Part shown: positions 9,199-17,283 of the stretch, piece by piece | How the letters are laid out: each line of letters opens with the position of its first letter | Numbering within the stretch: the first letter of the stretch is position 1 | DNA from: Klebsormidium nitens | Lineage: Eukaryota > Plantae > Klebsormidiophyceae | Assembly (NCBI GenBank): GCA_000708835.1 | Contig: DF237317.1 | Location: 1-64,000, forward strand | Length of the DNA stretch: 64,000 nt | Reading direction: 5' to 3' | Translations under genes and position numbers: made by a program | Notes under the pieces: generated by a model | Database searches by the model: none | What the model saw: the letters and a program-made list of their open reading frames with translations, nothing else | Told to the model about the DNA's origin: nothing

Positions 9199-12100
9199 TC
9201 ACAACTCCGTTAACCCAGCTAGCGCTGCATATCGCTCTCTCGTTTCTGTCAGAATCTGCTTTCTCGACATTCGTAGCCGGAGCGCCATGCGCAACCTCCC
9301 AATATCCCGACCCTTGCCATCGAAAGTCCCCGCGTCTAGTTCTTCCGAGAGCCGTCGGTCCTCGTCGAGCGTCGTCGCATGCTGCCCTAGCAGGGCTTCG
9401 CACCGCTGCACGACCTGCCGGGCGGCCGCTGCACGCGTCGGCCGACTGATGGCGGCACCACTCAGGCTCGCGCTGCGGTGCCACTCCGCCTCCAAGGACG
9501 ACAGCTCTGCGGCATCGCGCGCATGGAGGACGTACAGTGACTCGAGCAGCCGGGGGGCGGCGCCGTCTGCACATGAGCGCCAAAAGCTCGGATTCGGTAG
9601 TATAGGGGCTTTGCTGGCCCTCAAAAGACAAGGTTTGGAGAGAAGGCGAGGGTTCAGTAACGAATTTAAGCTGTACTAAGGGCAGCAAGCCACAACTACA
9701 GGACCCAGACAAGGCCTCGTCCTTTCGGGGCCTTCTGCGCAGTGCAGTGTGTATCTCAAGATCGGGCCGAGAACTCTTCAGGGCGACCGCGGGAGACATC
9801 CGACTCTCGGTCCTGACTTGATGTCACTCCACAAGCGGTTCCTCGTTCACAGGTCCTTCGCCGGATATATTCGCTCATAAGTTGGAGATCGCAAGAGCGG
9901 TGCGCACCTGCGTCTGCAGCGAGGTTGCGGCTACCGCCCATCAACGTGGTCAGGAGCTCCTCTTTCTGGCGGGCCAATCTGACCGGGGCGTCCACGTCGT
10001 CAAGCAGAGCCTGCAACATGCACCAGCCGGCTCGTAACGACAGCTCACGTGTGCTTTTGCAGGGCTGACCACTGACCAGTACGTACAAGATCAAAAGGAT
10101 GCGCTAAATCGTACTGAACGAGAGGTTGATGGAGCAGTAGATAATAGAGTATTCGTCTTGAGAAGTACAGAAGGCGATGGTCCCCCCTTACTTTCACATG
10201 GGAGCGCAGAAGTTTGGAAGTTTCAAAGATAGCCTGCAGCAAGATGAGGGTGAGGGTTACCTTGAGGCAGTCATAGAGCGGCACTTTGTCCGCTGGGTTT
10301 ATGTTGGGCACAAAGCCATAGGAGACGAGAAACTCTAAGTTGGTGTGGGGGCCATAAGAGATGGTGGCCTCCTGGCCGGCCGAGAGGGGGGTAGATGCGA
10401 AGACCTGGAAGCAGGCTTCAGCCGGGGGGGCACCCTGCACCAAGGGTATAGGGGCTGTCACACAGACTGTAGGCAGAGAAAGGCCCAGTGAGTGGCTGAG
10501 GCAAAGTACTTGACGAGAATTTTCCAGCACTGGGGTAATTGGCATTCAGGTCAGGCATCTCGAATCACAGCAACAGGACGTATATCAATAGTTTAAGCAA
10601 TGGGAGAGCAAAGCGGCGTTTCAGCATTCGACTCCGTTTTCAATTGTGCATTCGAGGACAGGTGAAAGTATACAGATTGCCGCCCTGCGACTGTTTCATT
10701 TTGGCCAAACTTAGGCAGCCCTCTCGAAGGGTGGAAGAAGTCACTCGATCAAGCCTCTACACAACGCTGACAGAAACGGAGCCGCACCTGAGGGCTGTGG
10801 ATCCTCCACTGGGCAAAGCCCAGGTCCGGCGAAGAGTGCGACCGCGGCCGAACAGGTGACGGGTTGGCCTGGAACGGCCTTGCAGTATGTCGAGCTCGCA
10901 GTGGGAGCGCTAAGGTGGGCGGGGCATGGTTGAGCATGTCCGCCACAGGGACCAAGCACTGCACCGGAACCCCCTCTAGAGTCGTGGAGAAGCTGCGAGT
11001 CAAGACGGTGCGGAGGGCCCACAGGGCGGTGGCGTGGCTGAAAGGGGGTCGCCACAACGGGGGGGTGGGAGGAGGTTCCGATGAGATAGCTGATACGAGG
11101 GATAGCGAGACGCTTGGACCATCGGAAGGGGGTTCGTAATTGTCAACCTCGACATCCGTTTGCAGGCTCTCTCTCTTTGGCGACTCGCTTGGTGAGGAGG
11201 TTGTGAGAGGCGAAGCTCGAGAGAAGGAGGGTGGAAGGGTAGAAGGTCCCTTCACTGGGGTTGGAATCGAGGGGTTGGTGTCCAGACGGGAGTTGGCGGC
11301 CAATTGGATGCGTGTGGCCTGGTCTTGCCACTCATCATCAGCCGCAAGAGCTGCCCCCACTGCTGCCTTGCTCTGGAGCTCTGACAGCTCTTGAGGGGTC
11401 CAATCAGCAACCGACTGCTGGGAAGGAGGTAGCGGGATCAGATTAGGCTTGAAAACATGTATGTCACAGACCGCCAGCAAAGTCAAGTAGCTGTTGAGCA
11501 ATGAATGAGCCCCAACTGTGGATCATGAAGAAGATGCAATTATGTCAGTTTGTTCCTCAGAACTCTCATGTCCGCACAACTGCGCAACACCTTGTGTGCA
11601 CCTCGTAATGGGCTGGCAGCAGGCGCGCATAGTGCTGCCACACGGAGTCTGGCCGCTGCAGCTCCGCCAGCAGCTTGACGGCCAGCCGACAGACCGCCTC
11701 ATGCAAACCACCCCTCGATCCCACCGCTTCTCCGCCCCCTTGTTGCCCCCCTTTTGTCTCCTTTGGTACCATCAGTACTGCAGCTATGGGTACCGACAAG
11801 AGCAGTTGGCCCGCTTGCACGGCGGCCCCGCTGGGCACCGCCAGGCCTCGCACACCCGTCGGGCTGACAGTTAGCTGCAATAAGGGGGGCTGTGGCCCAA
11901 CCTGCGCTGCCTGCCAGAGCTCAGACAGAAGTGTGGCTTCCTGGTCTGCCTGGGTGACTTTTGAGATGGGTTTTAGGGTGGCCGCCAGCTGGGCCTGGAC
12001 CAATGTGGCAGCAGAAACAGGAGCAGAGAGGACATTGGCAGGGGGGACGAGTGACTGTCCATTTTGAAAGCAAGCTGGGAGCTGGAAGAGGCTGCTTGAG

Positions 12101-12231
12101 CGTGCAGTGGCGCCAAAGCACGGCAATGCCACAAAGTGGATAATCCTGCACTGGCTGCCTCCGTTGACTGCCCGCGAATGCAGGCACCGTGCAAACAATG
12201 CTGATGGGTGTGCAAGGTTGCAGCACTCCAT
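9199..12231 (-). CDS. SET-domain protein lysine methyltransferase, Rubisco-LSMT/SETD3-like, probable plastid transit peptide, 5 exons, ~633 aa
   Basis: Exons 12231-11602, 11414-10788 (tandem CAGCAG acceptor), 10434-10261, 10010-9908, 9566-9199. Motifs GVRGL, WQHYARLLP, VLTRSF, LVPVADMLNH, TISYGPHTNLEFLVSYGF and a C-terminal TTLDEDRRL...RLRMALRLR substrate-binding-type helix. Confidence 0.88.
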
Positions 12232-12704
12232 GCCGCTGTGATCAATCCTTCCCAGCTGCGCTCTGCGTCAAATCTGCCGATGAGGCAGCTGAAACTTGAA
12301 GCAAGCTATTCTACCTGGCCAGCAGAGGGCTAGGTCCTACATGCAGCAGCTCCATGCGATCATCTCCTCTAACCCCACTGGTGTAAACAAGATTCTTCCA
12401 GTACCCGTTGCTACCGTTTTTATGCGCTTCACAAATTTTGACACAAATATTGCAAGCACGGGTTGCCGCGCGATGAGCCGTTTCTGAGCGTTCGTAAAGC
12501 ATTACCGTATGACGGTGCCAATTCACACAGCCGGTGTTCGTCGCTGCGCCCAGGCTCGGGCTGCATGTTCTCTGATTCTAATCTCTCCCCCTTCTTCTCC
12601 GAAACGGCGAAAGGTTCTGTCACCTGTGTCAGCCAGACATCTGAAACAGTGAAGTTTCCACCATCTGGAGCGCTGAGGAGCAGTCCTGTGTTTTGCGGGC
12701 AGCC

Positions 12705-13001
12705 ATGTCCTCTTCCCGCGAGGTGCTCTCGCTGTACCGGGACTTCCTGCGTGTGGGCCGCAAGTTCAGCAACTACAACGTTCGCGAGTTTGTCAAGCGG
12801 CGTGCGAGGGAGGGTTTCCGCGAGGGCCAGGCGTTGACAGACCCTGCCACCATCTCGGCAGCAGTGAAGCAGGCCAAGGACCAACTCGCGGTGGCCAAGC
12901 GGCAGTCTGTCGTGTACTCCCTGTTTGCGCAGCCTGTAAAGTCTATCATGGAGTTGAAGACGGCGGTGGGGGATCAAAGCGTCACTGTCGCCAAGGCTTA
13001 A
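12705..13001 (+). CDS. ISD11: LYR-motif protein ISD11/LYRM4 (partner of mitochondrial cysteine desulfurase NFS1), intronless, 98 aa
   Basis: MSSSREVLSLYRDFLRVGRKFSNYNVREFVKRRAREGFRE...AKDQLAVAKRQSVVYSLF. Contains LYR plus the F(S)NYN(V)REF..RR..(E)GFR and RQ..V..LF hallmarks of LYRM4. Confidence 0.95.
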   Translation: MSSSREVLSLYRDFLRVGRKFSNYNVREFVKRRAREGFREGQALTDPATISAAVKQAKDQLAVAKRQSVVYSLFAQPVKSIMELKTAVGDQSVTVAKA

Positions 13002-13014
13002 TAGCATATCATTG

Positions 13015-15980
13015 ATGCAATGCTGGCGATGCTGGGCGAGCAAGGGGATGGGAAGCAGACTGGAGGCGATTGCGAGGGGCGCCTGCAGGCAGCAAGCCTC
13101 AAGATTTGCGCTTAGCTTTGCGACGGAAGATCAGATTGCGTTCTTAGGTAGTGGTACAAGCACTTCGTTTTTTTGTGGGAGGCAGCCTTGCAAAGGTGTC
13201 AGCCTTGGCTCACTGGTTGATCCACCACCTTTCTCGGCAAGCAAGCGTCCAAAACCTTTTCATAATCATCCCACATCCGTGCACCACCTCTTCCATCAGA
13301 AAAGCAGCATTGGACACACCATGACGTTCCACACAGCAGCCCTTCCAGCAGCAACCCTCTCGGGGCAGGGCACTCGGTTAGATGTACAGCCTGATCTAGT
13401 TGCAGCAGAAGGTTTTCCAGAGGCAGCCGCATCAGATATCGGCGAAGCGGAGGTTGACATGCATGGTGTGAAGACCAGAGGGGAGGGATCAGAAGGCGCG
13501 TCAACATCCAGGGGTTTTGGGGACAAGGGGGGCAAGTCGAATCCTGGTGCCCTGCGTTTCCGGGAGCGGATCATGATTGATCGGGTCTTTGAAGAGCTGG
13601 GCCTGGACAAGCTTTCCGCACAGGTGAATACACTCTCAGCCTCACAGACAAGAGGTTTCTCGAGTATGAAAGACTAAAGTTGGTCTTGGCAATGGGCGCT
13701 TTCACGGTTGCCGAAATGCTGTGGCCATATGGAACTTCAAGTAAGAGTACTTTGGTTCTTATTAGTACTGGTGGTGTGCACCGCAGGTGGGTGGCATCGG
13801 GAAGAAGGTGCGCCATCATGTGAACCCCCTGCGGGCGGAGTTCCAGGTGAGACACTTCGTCGAAGCAGTTGACACTAAGCTATCTTTGCCTGAATGCTGC
13901 TGGAAGCGGAGACGGTTTGTAAGTTAAGGTCGGCGAAGTGATCTATATTATAATCTGGTGAACCCAAATCTTTTTGTTGAGCATGAAGTCCAACCAACTT
14001 TCTGTTGTGGTCAAGTGGGTCCCGAACATTACAGAGGGCACTGTGGGATTGCGTTTTCTGGATCTGACGGCTTCTCTTGCATAGCGTAGGTGAAGACCCC
14101 GCCGCCAGTATGGGCTGACGTCTTTGCGGACCCGTCGCTGCCGTTGCATGTGGACATTGGGTGTGCGCAGGGGCGCTTCGTGCTGACGCTGGCCAAGAGG
14201 AGCGAGGGGGCAACCAATTTCCTGGGGCTTGAGATCCGCTCGCAGGTAGAGCCCCTCATTCATCGCATACTCCTTAAGTTCAAAGTAGCTACTAATGGCT
14301 TGGAAACGGAGTATGTCCAAAAGATTCATGTCGCTGGGACTGCCTTTTTTCATGGCTTTGTTCTTATTGACCTGCAAATATCCAAGTAAGTTGTCAGCTT
14401 CAGAAGTTTCGTTCTTAGATTGTGCTAGTCCTGATAACCCTCTGCCACTGTGCTGTTACTAAAGATGCTGGCGGCAGCGACATAAAGGTGTTCACGATTC
14501 TCTCACTCGTTACACTGTGCTCCATCTCCAAATCTCTTGCTGTTTATTTGTGCAGCTGGTGGAGCGGGCAAATAGGTGGAGTGCCGGGTTGGAACTGCGG
14601 AATGCGTAAGTGCCCTGTCTCCTGTGAGACTTAAAGAGTTTCTCTCGTTTTTCCCCAAGTTCAAAGGGTCAATTCAGCACTGTGACCCATGGGAAGTATC
14701 ATTGCGAGTTGAGAATAGCAGCTTGGCACGACCTTCTCTGTTTGCTGTCGCTATCTTTGGAGATCGGCTTGCACTCGGGGCTCGTTTCCTACGTGCTTTG
14801 ATCACACAGGTTTTGAGAGACAAGCCCCTTAGGTCAGCAACCACTTTCACCACCTTGGTCCTTCTAGCGAAGTGAAAGGGGCTCTCGCAGAAGACTGTGT
14901 ACATGATAATGTCTGGAGTCCTGTTCAGTTGGCTCGACTGGTCATGCCGATCTCGTGCACAGTTGTTTTTGGGTATCTTCTCACCGTCTGCTGACCCCCA
15001 TTTCCTCCACTTGGGGTGCAGCCACTTTCTGGTGGCCAACGCGACCATCTCCTTGGACTCCATCCTGGCCACGTACCCGGGTCCGCTCACCTATGTCACC
15101 ATTCTGGTAAGGGCCACCTACATTCCCTCCCCCTCATGAGTTGTCCGTCTGAGGTTTCGGTTTTGTGCCGTCGCTTCTCTTCTTCCTCCTTTGCCGTCTC
15201 CTCCTATCTCTGTCTTGCACAACTTGATCTCCTCGAGGATTGTTTTGTACTTTACGTGTGCTTTGCTCTGGCCGCTGCGTCTGCTCGCGGCTTAACGTGC
15301 CCAACACTTACGCTTCCTGCCCCGTATTGCAGTGTCCGGACCCTCACTTCAAGAACCGCGTTAAGAACCGGCGGGTCGTGCAGCCGTCGCTGGTGGAGGC
15401 CATCTGCCAGAAGCTCGTGCCGGGTGGAAAGGTGAGGGGAAGCAAGCCCATATCCCGGATATCGTTGTTGTCGACTGTAAGAAGGAATTGCTCCAGTGGT
15501 TCCACCCGTGGGAGCAAAGGACACATGCATGCACAGAGGCAGATGCTAGGGTATAGATTCCGGAGTTCCCGATGGTGCTTCTGATAAGGTACTTGTATGG
15601 AAACAACGGCGCCTGCACGTGCGCGTTTCCTCTTCAACCTGCTACAGCACAGCTGGCGCTCAGTGGGATTCGGCGTCCGTGGTTCGCAGGTGTTCGTGCA
15701 GTCGGACGTCCTGGAGGTGGCCGACGATATGAAGTATCAGATCCAGGCAGCGGGGGGCACGTGGCTTAGCTTAGCGGGCGAGCACGCACGCACCGACCAG
15801 TGCACGCCACAGGGGTGGCTCCTCGAGAGCCCGCTCGGAGTGCCCACGGAGCGGGAGACGTTCGCGGTGGCTAATGGGGAGTCGATCTACAGGGCGCTTT
15901 TTGTTCGTAACGAAAGGGAGTTCCGATGCATAGGGGATCTCGAAAAAGATGCGGAGGGTCAGAAGTCACAGGTGGTGTAA
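13015..15980 (+). CDS. trmB: tRNA (guanine-N7)-methyltransferase, bacterial-type TrmB, organelle-targeted, 7 exons, ~449 aa
   Basis: Exons 13015-13623, 13787-13846, 14090-14245, 14556-14605, 15022-15106, 15333-15431, 15690-15980. Motifs VRHHVNPL, HVDIGCAQGRF, NFLGLEIR, CPDPHFK, FVQSDVLEVA, NP-like SPLGVPTERE. The start could be a later in-frame ATG (13048 or 13321). Confidence 0.92.
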
Positions 15981-17283
15981 TGCATAATACAAGCGGGCGT
16001 TCTGCCAAGGTGCTATGCGAATCAGTCGTCTTACCCAGTATGGAGTGCAGGCCCGATGGCCTCAACCCTGAAAGGTGACGACTGTCTGATCAGGTGGGCA
16101 AATACGTCAAGTGTCAGGGGGGTCTAACAGCTTATATCTGCGGAATTAGCTTTATCACAGCACAAAGACTTGATTGGTGGTCGTTCCGCAGGAACTAAGC
16201 AGTTTAGCGCGCACATTATGCGTATGTTAACCACCGTAAGCTGGATTGTACCAAGCTTGGTCACATGCATGACCTGCATCTGGCATAGGACCCAGTAGTT
16301 CGATATTCAACAAGTATAGTCAGTGTTTATGCGCCTAGTGCGGTGAACAATGGTGCAGTGAACAAGACATGTGATCTGAAATGCATTGTGAGAGTAATAA
16401 CATGCGAATGTTGCATGGTTACCATGAAACGCATGTCTAAAAGTATAGTGTCAAGCATGGATGTCCTCAAGCTTGCCGTGCACACATCCATTTAGCCACA
16501 CAATTCAAACGTGCATGTATGTCGACTTTTAGAATCACACTGAGAAACAACGATGCATCCTAATTCCAGCATGCAGGTGTCGTCGAGAATGATATTTGAC
16601 GTGCTGAGATACTACGTTCTCGCATGTCAGGAAAGCTATCTTGCTTGAAAACATATAGTGAGGGTGTCTGTTTGTCCCCCCGTCACTAGCCGTTGGCCTT
16701 ATAGGCTTCTGATGGTAACATGTGAACGTTGATCTTTTGTCAGTGTGAAACGTCAAGAAGGTTATATGCGCAATCAAATTGTCCTGCCTAAGTTTCCCCG
16801 TGTATTGCCAGTACACGCGATTTGGCGTTATGCACGGATGTATGTAAGTTCACAGTTGAATGAATGAAAGAATGCTTTCGACTTTTCCCTCATTCGATTA
16901 AATTAAGAGAATCGATGATTTCAAAACAGGTCAATTGCTAACCTCGGATAAGGCAAGCGCGCCCAATCACGCTGGCCAATCTTCGCTACACAATTGTCCA
17001 AGTTTCACTGACAACCCCGTATGTTTATTGCTAATGCTAAACTTGCTAACGCGTGTCCATCACAATAGCACCTTTTCCCCCTCGACAAAAGTAGTCAGCA
17101 GACAAGAAACTCACTATGGCATTAGGACCTCTGCAATAACAGCTCCAAAATGCAAGATTTGAACCTGGAAAAAAACCACGTCTTCTTCCGCTTTCGACCC
17201 TTGCTTTCCTATCATTCCTGCGCGCAGACTAATAACCGAGTCCGTCCAGAAAAACTCATTTTACTGTACACAGTAGCAAGTGG

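Follow-up and report, generated by a model that had tools for sequence, protein, structure and literature searches.

Contig DF237317.1 of Klebsormidium nitens (GenBank) was analysed over a window of 64,000 nucleotides. On the plus strand, it carries an ORF for a predicted ISD11 (LYRM4) protein, a small mitochondrial iron-sulfur helper, at 12705-13001, and this is followed by a gene of seven exons for a predicted tRNA methyltransferase, TrmB (Table 1). The sequence at the junction is as the original prediction of a bicistronic locus had described it: beyond the TAA of the first ORF, the sequence reads TAG CAT ATC ATT G up to the ATG at 13015. The two ORFs thus lie on the same strand without overlapping, each has its own start and stop codon, and the spacer between them is short, which is the arrangement of a bicistron. 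The upstream neighbour is annotated in GenBank on the minus strand and carries a Rubis-subs-bind domain.

Table 1 Features of the ISD11-TrmB locus on DF237317.1. P0007 is the annotated K. nitens TrmB protein
Feature	Position	Strand	Basis
RNA-free gap, presumed shared promoter region	12373..12598	.	RNA contigs on the upstream side stop at 12227-12372; those with ISD11 begin no earlier than 12599
5' leader, no ATG	12599..12704	+	RNA contigs start at 12599, 12604 and 12629 (three runs)
ORF1, predicted ISD11/LYRM4, 98 aa, intronless	12705..13001	+	Tandem stops TAA (12999-13001) and TAG
Inter-ORF spacer, 13 nt	13002..13014	+	Read from sequence
TrmB exon 1, N-terminal region	13015..13623	+	Open for 203 codons; RNA splice 13623/13787
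TrmB exon 2	13787..13846	+	RNA joints; identity to P0007
TrmB exon 3 (SAM-binding motif)	14090..14245	+	On its own: PF02390, 27.4 bits, and TIGR00091; RNA joints
TrmB exon 4	14556..14605	+	RNA joints; identity to P0007
TrmB exon 5	15022..15106	+	RNA joints; identity to P0007
TrmB exon 6	15333..15431	+	On its own: PF02390, 32.8 bits; RNA joints
TrmB exon 7, including stop codon	15690..15980	+	RNA joint; identity to P0007
3' UTR, approximate end	15981..16406	+	RNA contigs stop at 16267, 16314, 16364 and 16406

The product of the upstream ORF matches PF05347 (4e-20) and contains both the LYR motif (L10-Y11-R12) and the conserved F21. Among solved structures, its best match is human LYRM4 (4.5e-13); the top structures are all LYRM4, and the next-ranked LYR protein scores 3e-3. 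Judged from its sequence, the product would therefore be ISD11/LYRM4 rather than a member of another LYR subfamily. The ORF is under purifying selection (dN/dS of 0.05-0.09 against the relatives described below), which identifies it as a real gene. An exact look-up of the 98-aa product gave no record. The GenBank model of the LYR gene is 115 aa long and has an additional 5' exon, which is unsupported. The context of the ISD11 start codon is GCAGCCATGT. Reading the sequence confirmed that the ORF holds a single internal ATG, which lies in frame at 12948, and none out of frame. This internal ATG stands in a strong context (A at -3, G at +4), opens an ORF of 17 codons, and is kept in five of five taxa.

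Read from 13015, the seven exons of the downstream gene encode a product of 449 aa, whose residues 103-449 reproduce the annotated K. nitens TrmB (P0007) exactly. The annotated protein matches PF02390 (5.4e-29) from position 3 to position 172 of a profile of 173, TIGR00091 is matched colinearly by exons 3 and 6, the best solved-structure matches are bacterial TrmB, and orthologues across streptophytes carry the name TrmB. Consistent with this, ORF2 is predicted to encode a bacterial-type TrmB, i.e., a tRNA (guanine46-N7)-methyltransferase, with a full-length Methyltransf_4 domain. The stop-free frame of 203 codons that opens at 13015 does splice into TrmB, as had been proposed, through a GT donor at 13624.

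Transcription of the locus was followed in the short-read RNA contigs of four studies, one run from each. In each run, a single contig extended from 12599, 12604, 12629 or 12812, respectively, to 13620 and continued for 67 nt past the joint of intron 1. ISD11 is therefore present on spliced RNA together with TrmB exons 1 and 2. All six introns were represented by GT..AG joints in the contigs of the four runs, and no splice joint was found inside 12599-13620 in any of them. The depths of the ISD11-bearing contig and of the contig with exons 3-7 were 270 and 262, 533 and 490, 78 and 88, and 206 and 219, so that the ISD11 part and the TrmB 3' part agreed within ~10% while expression ranged over 7-fold among the four studies. 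This suggests that both ORFs are carried on a single mRNA molecule, with the reservation, given as a warning by the tool itself, that a short-read contig across two genes is not proof of a single transcript.

RNA depth was zero at 12401-12567 in all four runs and again after 16409. There is no ATG in 12568-12704, and neither AATAAA nor TGTAA occurs between the ISD11 stop and 13918. The RNA-free gap in front of the leader presumably contains a promoter shared by the two ORFs. Accordingly placed just upstream of ~12599, one promoter would drive a mature mRNA of ~2.15 kb, whose first exon would hold the complete 98-codon ISD11/LYRM4 ORF as well as the start of the TrmB ORF 13 nt past the tandem stop, with the second ORF running on across the six introns.

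The pair is conserved in four relatives of K. nitens (L001, L032, L002 and L006), in which ISD11 is 84-95% identical. In each of them, the ISD11 stop is followed after 9-29 nt (9 nt in L001, 13 nt in L032, 29 nt in both L002 and L006) by an ATG opening an ORF that begins 'MQ(C)W' and extends to the end of exon 1, and on contigs of sufficient length the remaining TrmB exons come next. The frame of ORF2 relative to ORF1 is +1 in K. nitens and L032, 0 in L001, and +2 in L002 and L006. In the latter two, an ATG also overlaps the stop (TGATG), and the spacer contains tiny ORFs. Three further sequences (L003-L005, 62% identity) are too short for judging the pair. Beyond these relatives, the synteny search that had been suggested as a check gave no further case: in 24 ISD11 loci from metagenomes (45-58% identity, and one short match of 65%), neither a TrmB within 5 kb downstream nor any tight downstream ORF was found, and ISD11 was absent within 8 kb upstream of the Chara braunii TrmB and within 6 kb upstream of the Marchantia TrmB. 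On these sequence comparisons, the ISD11-TrmB pair is specific to the Klebsormidium clade. The coupling of an Fe-S/sulfur system to tRNA m7G46 methylation, which had been put forward as a consequence of the pair, is unsupported, given that neither Chara nor Marchantia nor any of the 24 other ISD11 loci has the pair.

Three in-frame ATGs could open TrmB (13015, 13048 and 13321), and GenBank chooses the last of these in a model separate from ISD11. The 13-nt gap of the original prediction holds for ATG 13015 and varies with the start that is chosen; a start at 13321 would mean a spacer of 319 nt, still inside the published range for green-lineage bicistrons. The 102 codons before 13321 are free of stops in three diverged lineages (shuffle P of 0.07, 0.017 and 0.0018), for which the joint chance is ~2e-6 if the lineages are independent. 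The encoded extension is basic in all lineages (K+R 12-16, D+E 2-4) and gives way to an acidic stretch. Conservation is highest in the first 25 residues of the extension, and the 'MQ(C)W' start is common to the five taxa. Considering that these 102 codons stay open and basic in three lineages, TrmB most likely starts at 13015, or at the ATG at 13048, which stands in a strong context, and the GenBank start is probably internal to the ORF. The extension itself is, by its composition, most likely a basic, fast-evolving organelle-targeting presequence, in line with the transit-peptide-like N-terminus noted originally. Substitutions in 13015-13320 fall almost evenly on the three codon positions (26/30/34), with an omega of 0.42, and of 0.84 for L002 against L006. 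As these substitutions are almost neutral, the evidence for coding rests on openness and composition and not on conservation of residues. The N-terminal regions of TrmB from Chara, Spirogloea and land plants did not align to the K. nitens extension and are thus uninformative on the start codon.

Taken together, ISD11 and TrmB, 13 nt apart, probably form a nuclear bicistronic gene of K. nitens that is expressed as one spliced mRNA. The RNA contigs of the four studies and the four relatives support the central proposal of a single nuclear transcript in which an intronless ISD11 ORF precedes TrmB. A rather improbable alternative is that two monocistronic genes are packed so closely that they overlap, the 3' UTR of ISD11 entering TrmB exon 1 and a TrmB promoter lying within or just after ISD11, with translation from 13321 and the assembler merging the two transcripts. 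The separate GenBank models, the near-neutral codon-position counts of the extension and the inability of short-read contigs to prove a single transcript would all agree with this. So would the ATG at 13321, whose context is good (ACC ATG A) and which is kept in three of the five taxa (K. nitens, L001 and L032), and the lack of any ATG in 13051-13320 (P 0.03), which would also fit a scanned leader. However, two independent genes would have to maintain matching depths in all four studies over the whole range of expression, no motif resembling a poly(A) signal follows ISD11, and in L002 and L006 the position equivalent to 13321 lacks an ATG. Moreover, a protein begun at 13321 would open with the acidic stretch, unlike a targeting peptide, and the frame in front of it would be open and presequence-like in three lineages by coincidence.

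If the locus is bicistronic, ribosomes would most likely reach ORF2 by leaky scanning past the ISD11 AUG, by analogy with the bicistrons of chlorophytes, with a possible contribution of reinitiation once the full ISD11 ORF, or the 17-codon ORF from AUG 12948, has been translated. With respect to the suitability for leaky scanning that had been read from the sequence, ISD11 has the single internal ATG, and the depletion of AUGs before ORF2 is not significant (12599-13014 holds 2 ATGs where 4.0 are expected, P 0.16). The ISD11 AUG itself stands in the context GCC AUG U, and with a purine at -3 and no G at +4 it is not clearly weak, as judged from these two positions. Out-of-frame AUGs follow at 13020 and 13029, just after the first TrmB ATG. 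The purine at -3, the strong AUG at 12948, these two AUGs and the P value of 0.16 were the points counted against leaky scanning.

A bicistron that relies chiefly on reinitiation for the translation of TrmB, with ribosomes passing from the stop of the full ISD11 ORF or of the 17-codon ORF to 13015, 13048 or 13321, is unlikely, even though the very short spacer in all five taxa, the retention of the strong AUG at 12948 and the TGATG overlap with tiny spacer ORFs in L002 and L006 would suit it. In eukaryotes, reinitiation after an ORF of 98 codons is usually inefficient. In the algae that have been tested, a stronger context of the ORF1 AUG lowered the output of ORF2, contrary to the prediction from reinitiation, while some reinitiation is compatible with the same work (PMC11892635). 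A stretch before the stop that resembles by eye the UGGGA motif of caliciviruses shows no change among K. nitens, L001 and L002 and is altered in L032; it therefore gives no sign of a calicivirus-type reinitiation element and was dropped. Production of an ISD11-TrmB fusion protein through stop readthrough, frameshifting or an alternative splice is extremely improbable. Only in L001 do the ORFs share a frame, with one TAA and 9 nt between them, whereas K. nitens has tandem stops and an ORF2 in the +1 frame, and the other three relatives are likewise out of frame. As the relative frames differ among the taxa, the product is not a fusion protein, and together with the tandem stops and the missing splice joint between the leader and the end of exon 1 in the four runs, this effectively refutes such a reading.

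A more far-reaching version of the bicistronic arrangement can be offered as a speculation of low probability. In the Klebsormidium lineage, the mRNA of an organellar TrmB would have captured ISD11 as its 5' cistron, giving a fixed and tunable ratio of the two products, and the alternative ORF2 starts (13015 or 13048 against 13321) could yield isoforms with different targeting. In such a case, the 9-29-nt spacing and the strong AUG at 12948 would reflect termination-coupled reinitiation, unlike the leaky scanning of chlorophytes.

The green-lineage precedents that had been invoked for the locus are borne out by the literature. Exclusively polycistronic nuclear loci in which LYR-motif proteins are over-represented are described for chlorophytes by Gallaher et al. 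2021 (PMC7896298), and leaky scanning has been shown experimentally for chlorophyte bicistrons (PMC11892635). In the chlorophyte LYR bicistrons presented there (TOM22-like/SDHAF3-like, LYR/COA4-like and LYRM9/TPT), the upstream ORF encodes a mitochondrial LYR-family protein of ~100 codons, as in K. nitens. Further features shared with the K. nitens locus are a short spacer, a longer and spliced ORF2, separate starts and stops, an arbitrary relative frame and an order that is kept in relatives. In contrast to these loci, the host here is a streptophyte (Klebsormidiophyceae), ISD11/LYRM4 is the LYR protein and is paired with TrmB, and the ORF1 AUG does not show the clearly weak context that is the leaky-scanning signature of the chlorophyte type. 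The ISD11-TrmB pair is absent from the curated tables of C. reinhardtii and A. protothecoides.

CDC26-TTM3 of plants and green algae, cited in PMC11892635, is likewise a bicistron with a small upstream ORF and a downstream enzyme. In both CDC26-TTM3 and ISD11-TrmB, the stop of ORF1 lies upstream of exon junctions, six of them in the latter. The ISD11 stop would thus be taken for a premature one by nonsense-mediated decay if ORF2 were not translated. CDC26-TTM3 is deeply conserved in plants and algae, whereas ISD11-TrmB is confined to the Klebsormidium clade. Human altMIEF1 was also among the solved-structure matches to the K. nitens ISD11 (E 0.003). This LYR-family microprotein shares an mRNA with MIEF1, its ORF lying upstream. 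As with ISD11, the 5'-proximal ORF of an mRNA annotated for another protein specifies a mitochondrial LYR-family protein; altMIEF1 represents another LYR subfamily, with another partner, in an animal, and is not homologous as a locus. A literature search found no paper that pairs ISD11/LYRM4 with TrmB or that reports nuclear polycistrons in Klebsormidium, in line with the original statement that the pair is not known to have been described.

Given that bicistronic mRNAs for LYR proteins have already been published for chlorophytes, ISD11-TrmB is a new case of a known kind, this type of mRNA encoding two proteins being already known from green algae. The locus by itself does not reveal a new mechanism, nor does it tie Fe-S biogenesis functionally to tRNA methylation, and a functional connection of ISD11 with TrmB is unsupported. 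It has consequences for two GenBank models, of which that of the LYR gene contains the unsupported 5' exon and that of TrmB is probably short of 102 N-terminal, targeting-like codons. The five taxa, among which the spacer measures 9, 13 or 29 nt and all three relative frames occur, form a natural series for testing how downstream ORFs are accessed. The locus also repeats a pattern in which mitochondrial microproteins of the LYR family serve as upstream cistrons, and it adds a well-documented case indicating that nuclear mRNAs for two proteins reach from chlorophytes into the streptophyte algae, which are more closely related to land plants.

A profile search matched the 98-residue upstream ORF to Pfam Complex1_LYR (4e-20), and its top solved-structure matches were all human LYRM4/ISD11 (4.5e-13), with other LYR proteins far behind. 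The L-Y-R motif occupies residues 10-12, the conserved Phe21 is present, and dN/dS values of 0.05-0.09 versus relatives indicate strong purifying selection. The original prediction described the junction correctly in every detail: the ISD11 TAA forms a tandem stop with TAG, followed by CAT ATC ATT G and an ATG at 13015, which opens a 203-codon frame that ends at a GT donor at 13624 and splices into the tRNA methyltransferase TrmB (ORF2). The seven exons from 13015 encode 449 residues. Exons 3 and 6 both score above the PF02390 threshold of Pfam when searched singly, they match TIGR00091 (TrmB) colinearly, and the best solved-structure matches of exon 3 are bacterial TrmB. A word search returned the annotated 347-residue K. 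nitens 'tRNA methyltransferase', which shows 100% identity across the latter half of exon 1; from Met103 the spliced model is exactly this protein, which matches PF02390 at 5e-29. GenBank (GCA_000708835.1, DF237317.1), whose record agrees with the window in both sequence and numbering, lists LYR and TrmB as two separate genes. TrmB has six introns in K. nitens, is one uninterrupted 311-codon ORF in Marchantia polymorpha (AP019868.1, 6001-6936) and spans ~11.9 kb in Chara.

Features of the ISD11-TrmB locus
Feature	Position	Strand	Remark
Upstream gene	11566-12372	minus, as annotated	633 aa, Rubis-subs-bind domain, SET/LSMT-like
GenBank LYR protein	12565-12613 + 12703-13001		115 residues; extra 5' exon, 89-nt intron 12614-12702
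ISD11/LYRM4 ORF	ATG 12705 to TAA 12999-13001	+	98 residues, read from sequence
TrmB exon 1	13015-13623	+	
TrmB exon 2	13787-13846	+	
TrmB exon 3	14090-14245	+	
TrmB exon 4	14556-14605	+	
TrmB exon 5	15022-15106	+	
TrmB exon 6	15333-15431	+	
TrmB exon 7	15690-15980	+	
Candidate TrmB start	13015	+	in frame, weak context
Candidate TrmB start	13048	+	in frame, GGG ATG G, strong context
Candidate TrmB start	13321	+	in frame, GenBank start

We screened 20 public RNA runs from seven studies, in which 36-73% of the sampled 12400-16300 words were present; in 19 of them the figure was 49-73%, as expected if only exons were represented. Contigs from four runs, one from each of four studies, were placed on 11900-16900. 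All six TrmB introns appeared as GT..AG joints, and cover in these runs was zero at 12401-12567 and beyond 16409, showing that the sequences are transcripts and not DNA. One contig per run started at 12599, 12604, 12629 or 12812 and extended, with no splice joint within 12599-13620, to 13620 and then 67 nt past the intron-1 joint. One spliced RNA piece thus contains the ISD11 ORF in full, the spacer and exon 1 of TrmB. Moreover, the depths of the ISD11-bearing contig and the exons 3-7 contig agreed across a 7-fold expression range (270 vs 262, 533 vs 490, 78 vs 88, 206 vs 219), which is unexpected for two independently expressed genes, and neither AATAAA nor TGTAA occurs between the ISD11 stop and 13918. 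Single molecules, cap site and poly(A) site lie beyond the reach of such short-read contigs; these contigs, together with the retention of the pair in four relatives, make it probable that ISD11 and TrmB form one transcription unit, as the predicted bicistronic mRNA entails.

The extra 5' LYR exon of GenBank and its intron joint were absent from the RNA contigs of the four runs. Contigs of three runs crossed 12614-12702 unspliced at full depth, starting at 12599 at the earliest. The intronless 98-residue ORF is the better LYR model and fits LYRM4 more closely than the 115-residue one. RNA contigs of the upstream minus-strand gene end at 12227-12372, and the ~230 nt without RNA cover between it and the ISD11 5' end (12373-12598) suggest a putative bidirectional promoter of compact size; L002, one of the relatives, has the same gene upstream of ISD11. 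All four runs contained a 297-nt contig over unspliced intron 2 (13821-14117), with a depth about 11-17% that of the spliced contigs, compared with 1-4% for other introns; splicing of this intron may therefore be slow, or the intron may be retained in part. The sole TGTAA near the 3' end, at 15976-15980, overlaps the TrmB stop codon (GGTGTAATG). As RNA contigs extend about 290-430 nt past it and 12600-16500 holds no AATAAA-like motif, the K. nitens poly(A) signal is not obvious here.

The four relatives compared (ISD11 identity 84-95%) have stop-to-ATG spacers of 9 nt (L001, SRR23617307), 13 nt (L032, SRR23617210) and 29 nt in both L002 and L006 (JGI metagenomes 3300060284 and 3300060285). In all four, ORF2 opens with 'MQ(C)W...' after the ISD11 stop and its exon 1 reaches the conserved end '...ERI.IDRV..EL.L.K.SAQ|GT'; TrmB exons follow in all three loci of sufficient length. 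The ORF2 frame relative to ISD11 differs among the five taxa (0, +1, +1, +2, +2), which rules out an ISD11-TrmB fusion protein as a conserved product.

Where TrmB begins determines the spacing. The 102 codons 5' of 13321 change fast and nearly evenly across codon positions (26/30/34 substitutions and omega 0.42, K. nitens vs L001; omega 0.84, L002 vs L006), so residue conservation is no proof that they code. However, their frame lacks stops in three diverged lineages (dinucleotide-shuffle P 0.07, 0.017 and 0.0018), while the other two frames hold 1-7. The extension is basic and hydroxylated everywhere (K+R 12-16, D+E 2-4), the next 100 residues being acidic, and its first 25 residues are best conserved (56% and 40% identity; the following 77 reach 29% and 10%). 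In addition, L002 and L006 lack an ATG at the 13321-equivalent position. These features point to translation of the 102 codons. Judged by sequence, a segment that must be open while free in its residues looks like a targeting presequence, consistent with the transit-peptide-like N-terminus originally proposed; a protein begun at 13321 would start with an acidic stretch. We therefore consider 13015 or 13048 the probable start and the 13-nt (or 46-nt) spacing probably real. A 13321 start would give 319 nt, above the 183-nt median of Chlamydomonas bicistrons and far under the 3,415-nt median of monocistronic neighbours (PMC11892635).

Published work on green-algal bicistrons invokes leaky scanning, in which some 40S subunits skip the ORF1 AUG and initiate at ORF2; a weaker ORF1 context increases ORF2 output, and extra upstream AUGs reduce it (PMC7896298, PMC11892635). 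Here, 40S subunits would partly bypass the ISD11 AUG to initiate at TrmB. The predicted suitability of the AUG layout held in part: a short leader carries no AUG, ORF1 is ~100 codons with no out-of-frame AUG, and its start codon has no G at +4. Against this, a purine occupies -3 of the ISD11 AUG, two out-of-frame AUGs lie downstream of 13015, and AUG depletion before ORF2 is not significant (2 vs 4.0 expected, P 0.16). The single internal AUG, in frame at 12948, has an optimal context and opens a 17-codon ORF to the ISD11 stop that would trap leaky ribosomes. Given these imperfections, reinitiation, especially after the 17-codon ORF, stays a live alternative contributor, and we give leaky scanning an even chance of being the main route. 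In L002 (6295-6330) and L006 (6340-6375), TGATG overlaps the ISD11 stop and opens a 4-codon ORF, and a 2-codon ORF precedes the TrmB ATG; these minimal ORFs might be relevant to reinitiation. Six exon junctions lie downstream of the ISD11 stop. A stop so placed would be expected to look premature to NMD unless translation of ORF2 removes the junction complexes. Such an interplay is described for CDC26-TTM3 (PMC11892635).

TrmB orthologues occur throughout streptophytes, and the ISD11-TrmB pair is lineage-restricted. The pair is present in the four relatives. The 8 kb upstream of TrmB in Chara braunii and the 6 kb upstream of it in Marchantia contain no ISD11; in Marchantia the gene annotated upstream is a thioredoxin. 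Of 24 metagenome ISD11 loci (45-58% identity, with one short match at 65%), none had TrmB within 5 kb downstream or a tight downstream ORF of any kind. Beyond adjacency in this one clade, nothing supports the proposed link between the NFS1-ISD11 sulfur system and m7G46 of tRNA. Among chlorophyte bicistrons, functional links were found for some pairs only, and most transcripts encode one or more proteins whose function is unknown (PMC7896298). The LYR motif is common among polycistronic proteins there, with five LYR subfamilies on bicistronic transcripts (Gallaher et al., PMC7896298); the K. nitens pair likewise includes a LYR protein, in this case LYRM4 with TrmB. The curated 2025 bicistron tables contain LYR/COA4-like and LYRM9/TPT pairs and no entry for LYRM4 or TrmB. 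No paper pairing ISD11/LYRM4 with TrmB, or reporting Klebsormidium nuclear polycistrons, was found among the papers searched. The proposed ISD11-TrmB bicistron is well supported but introduces no new principle; it is useful for annotation and for studies of mechanism.
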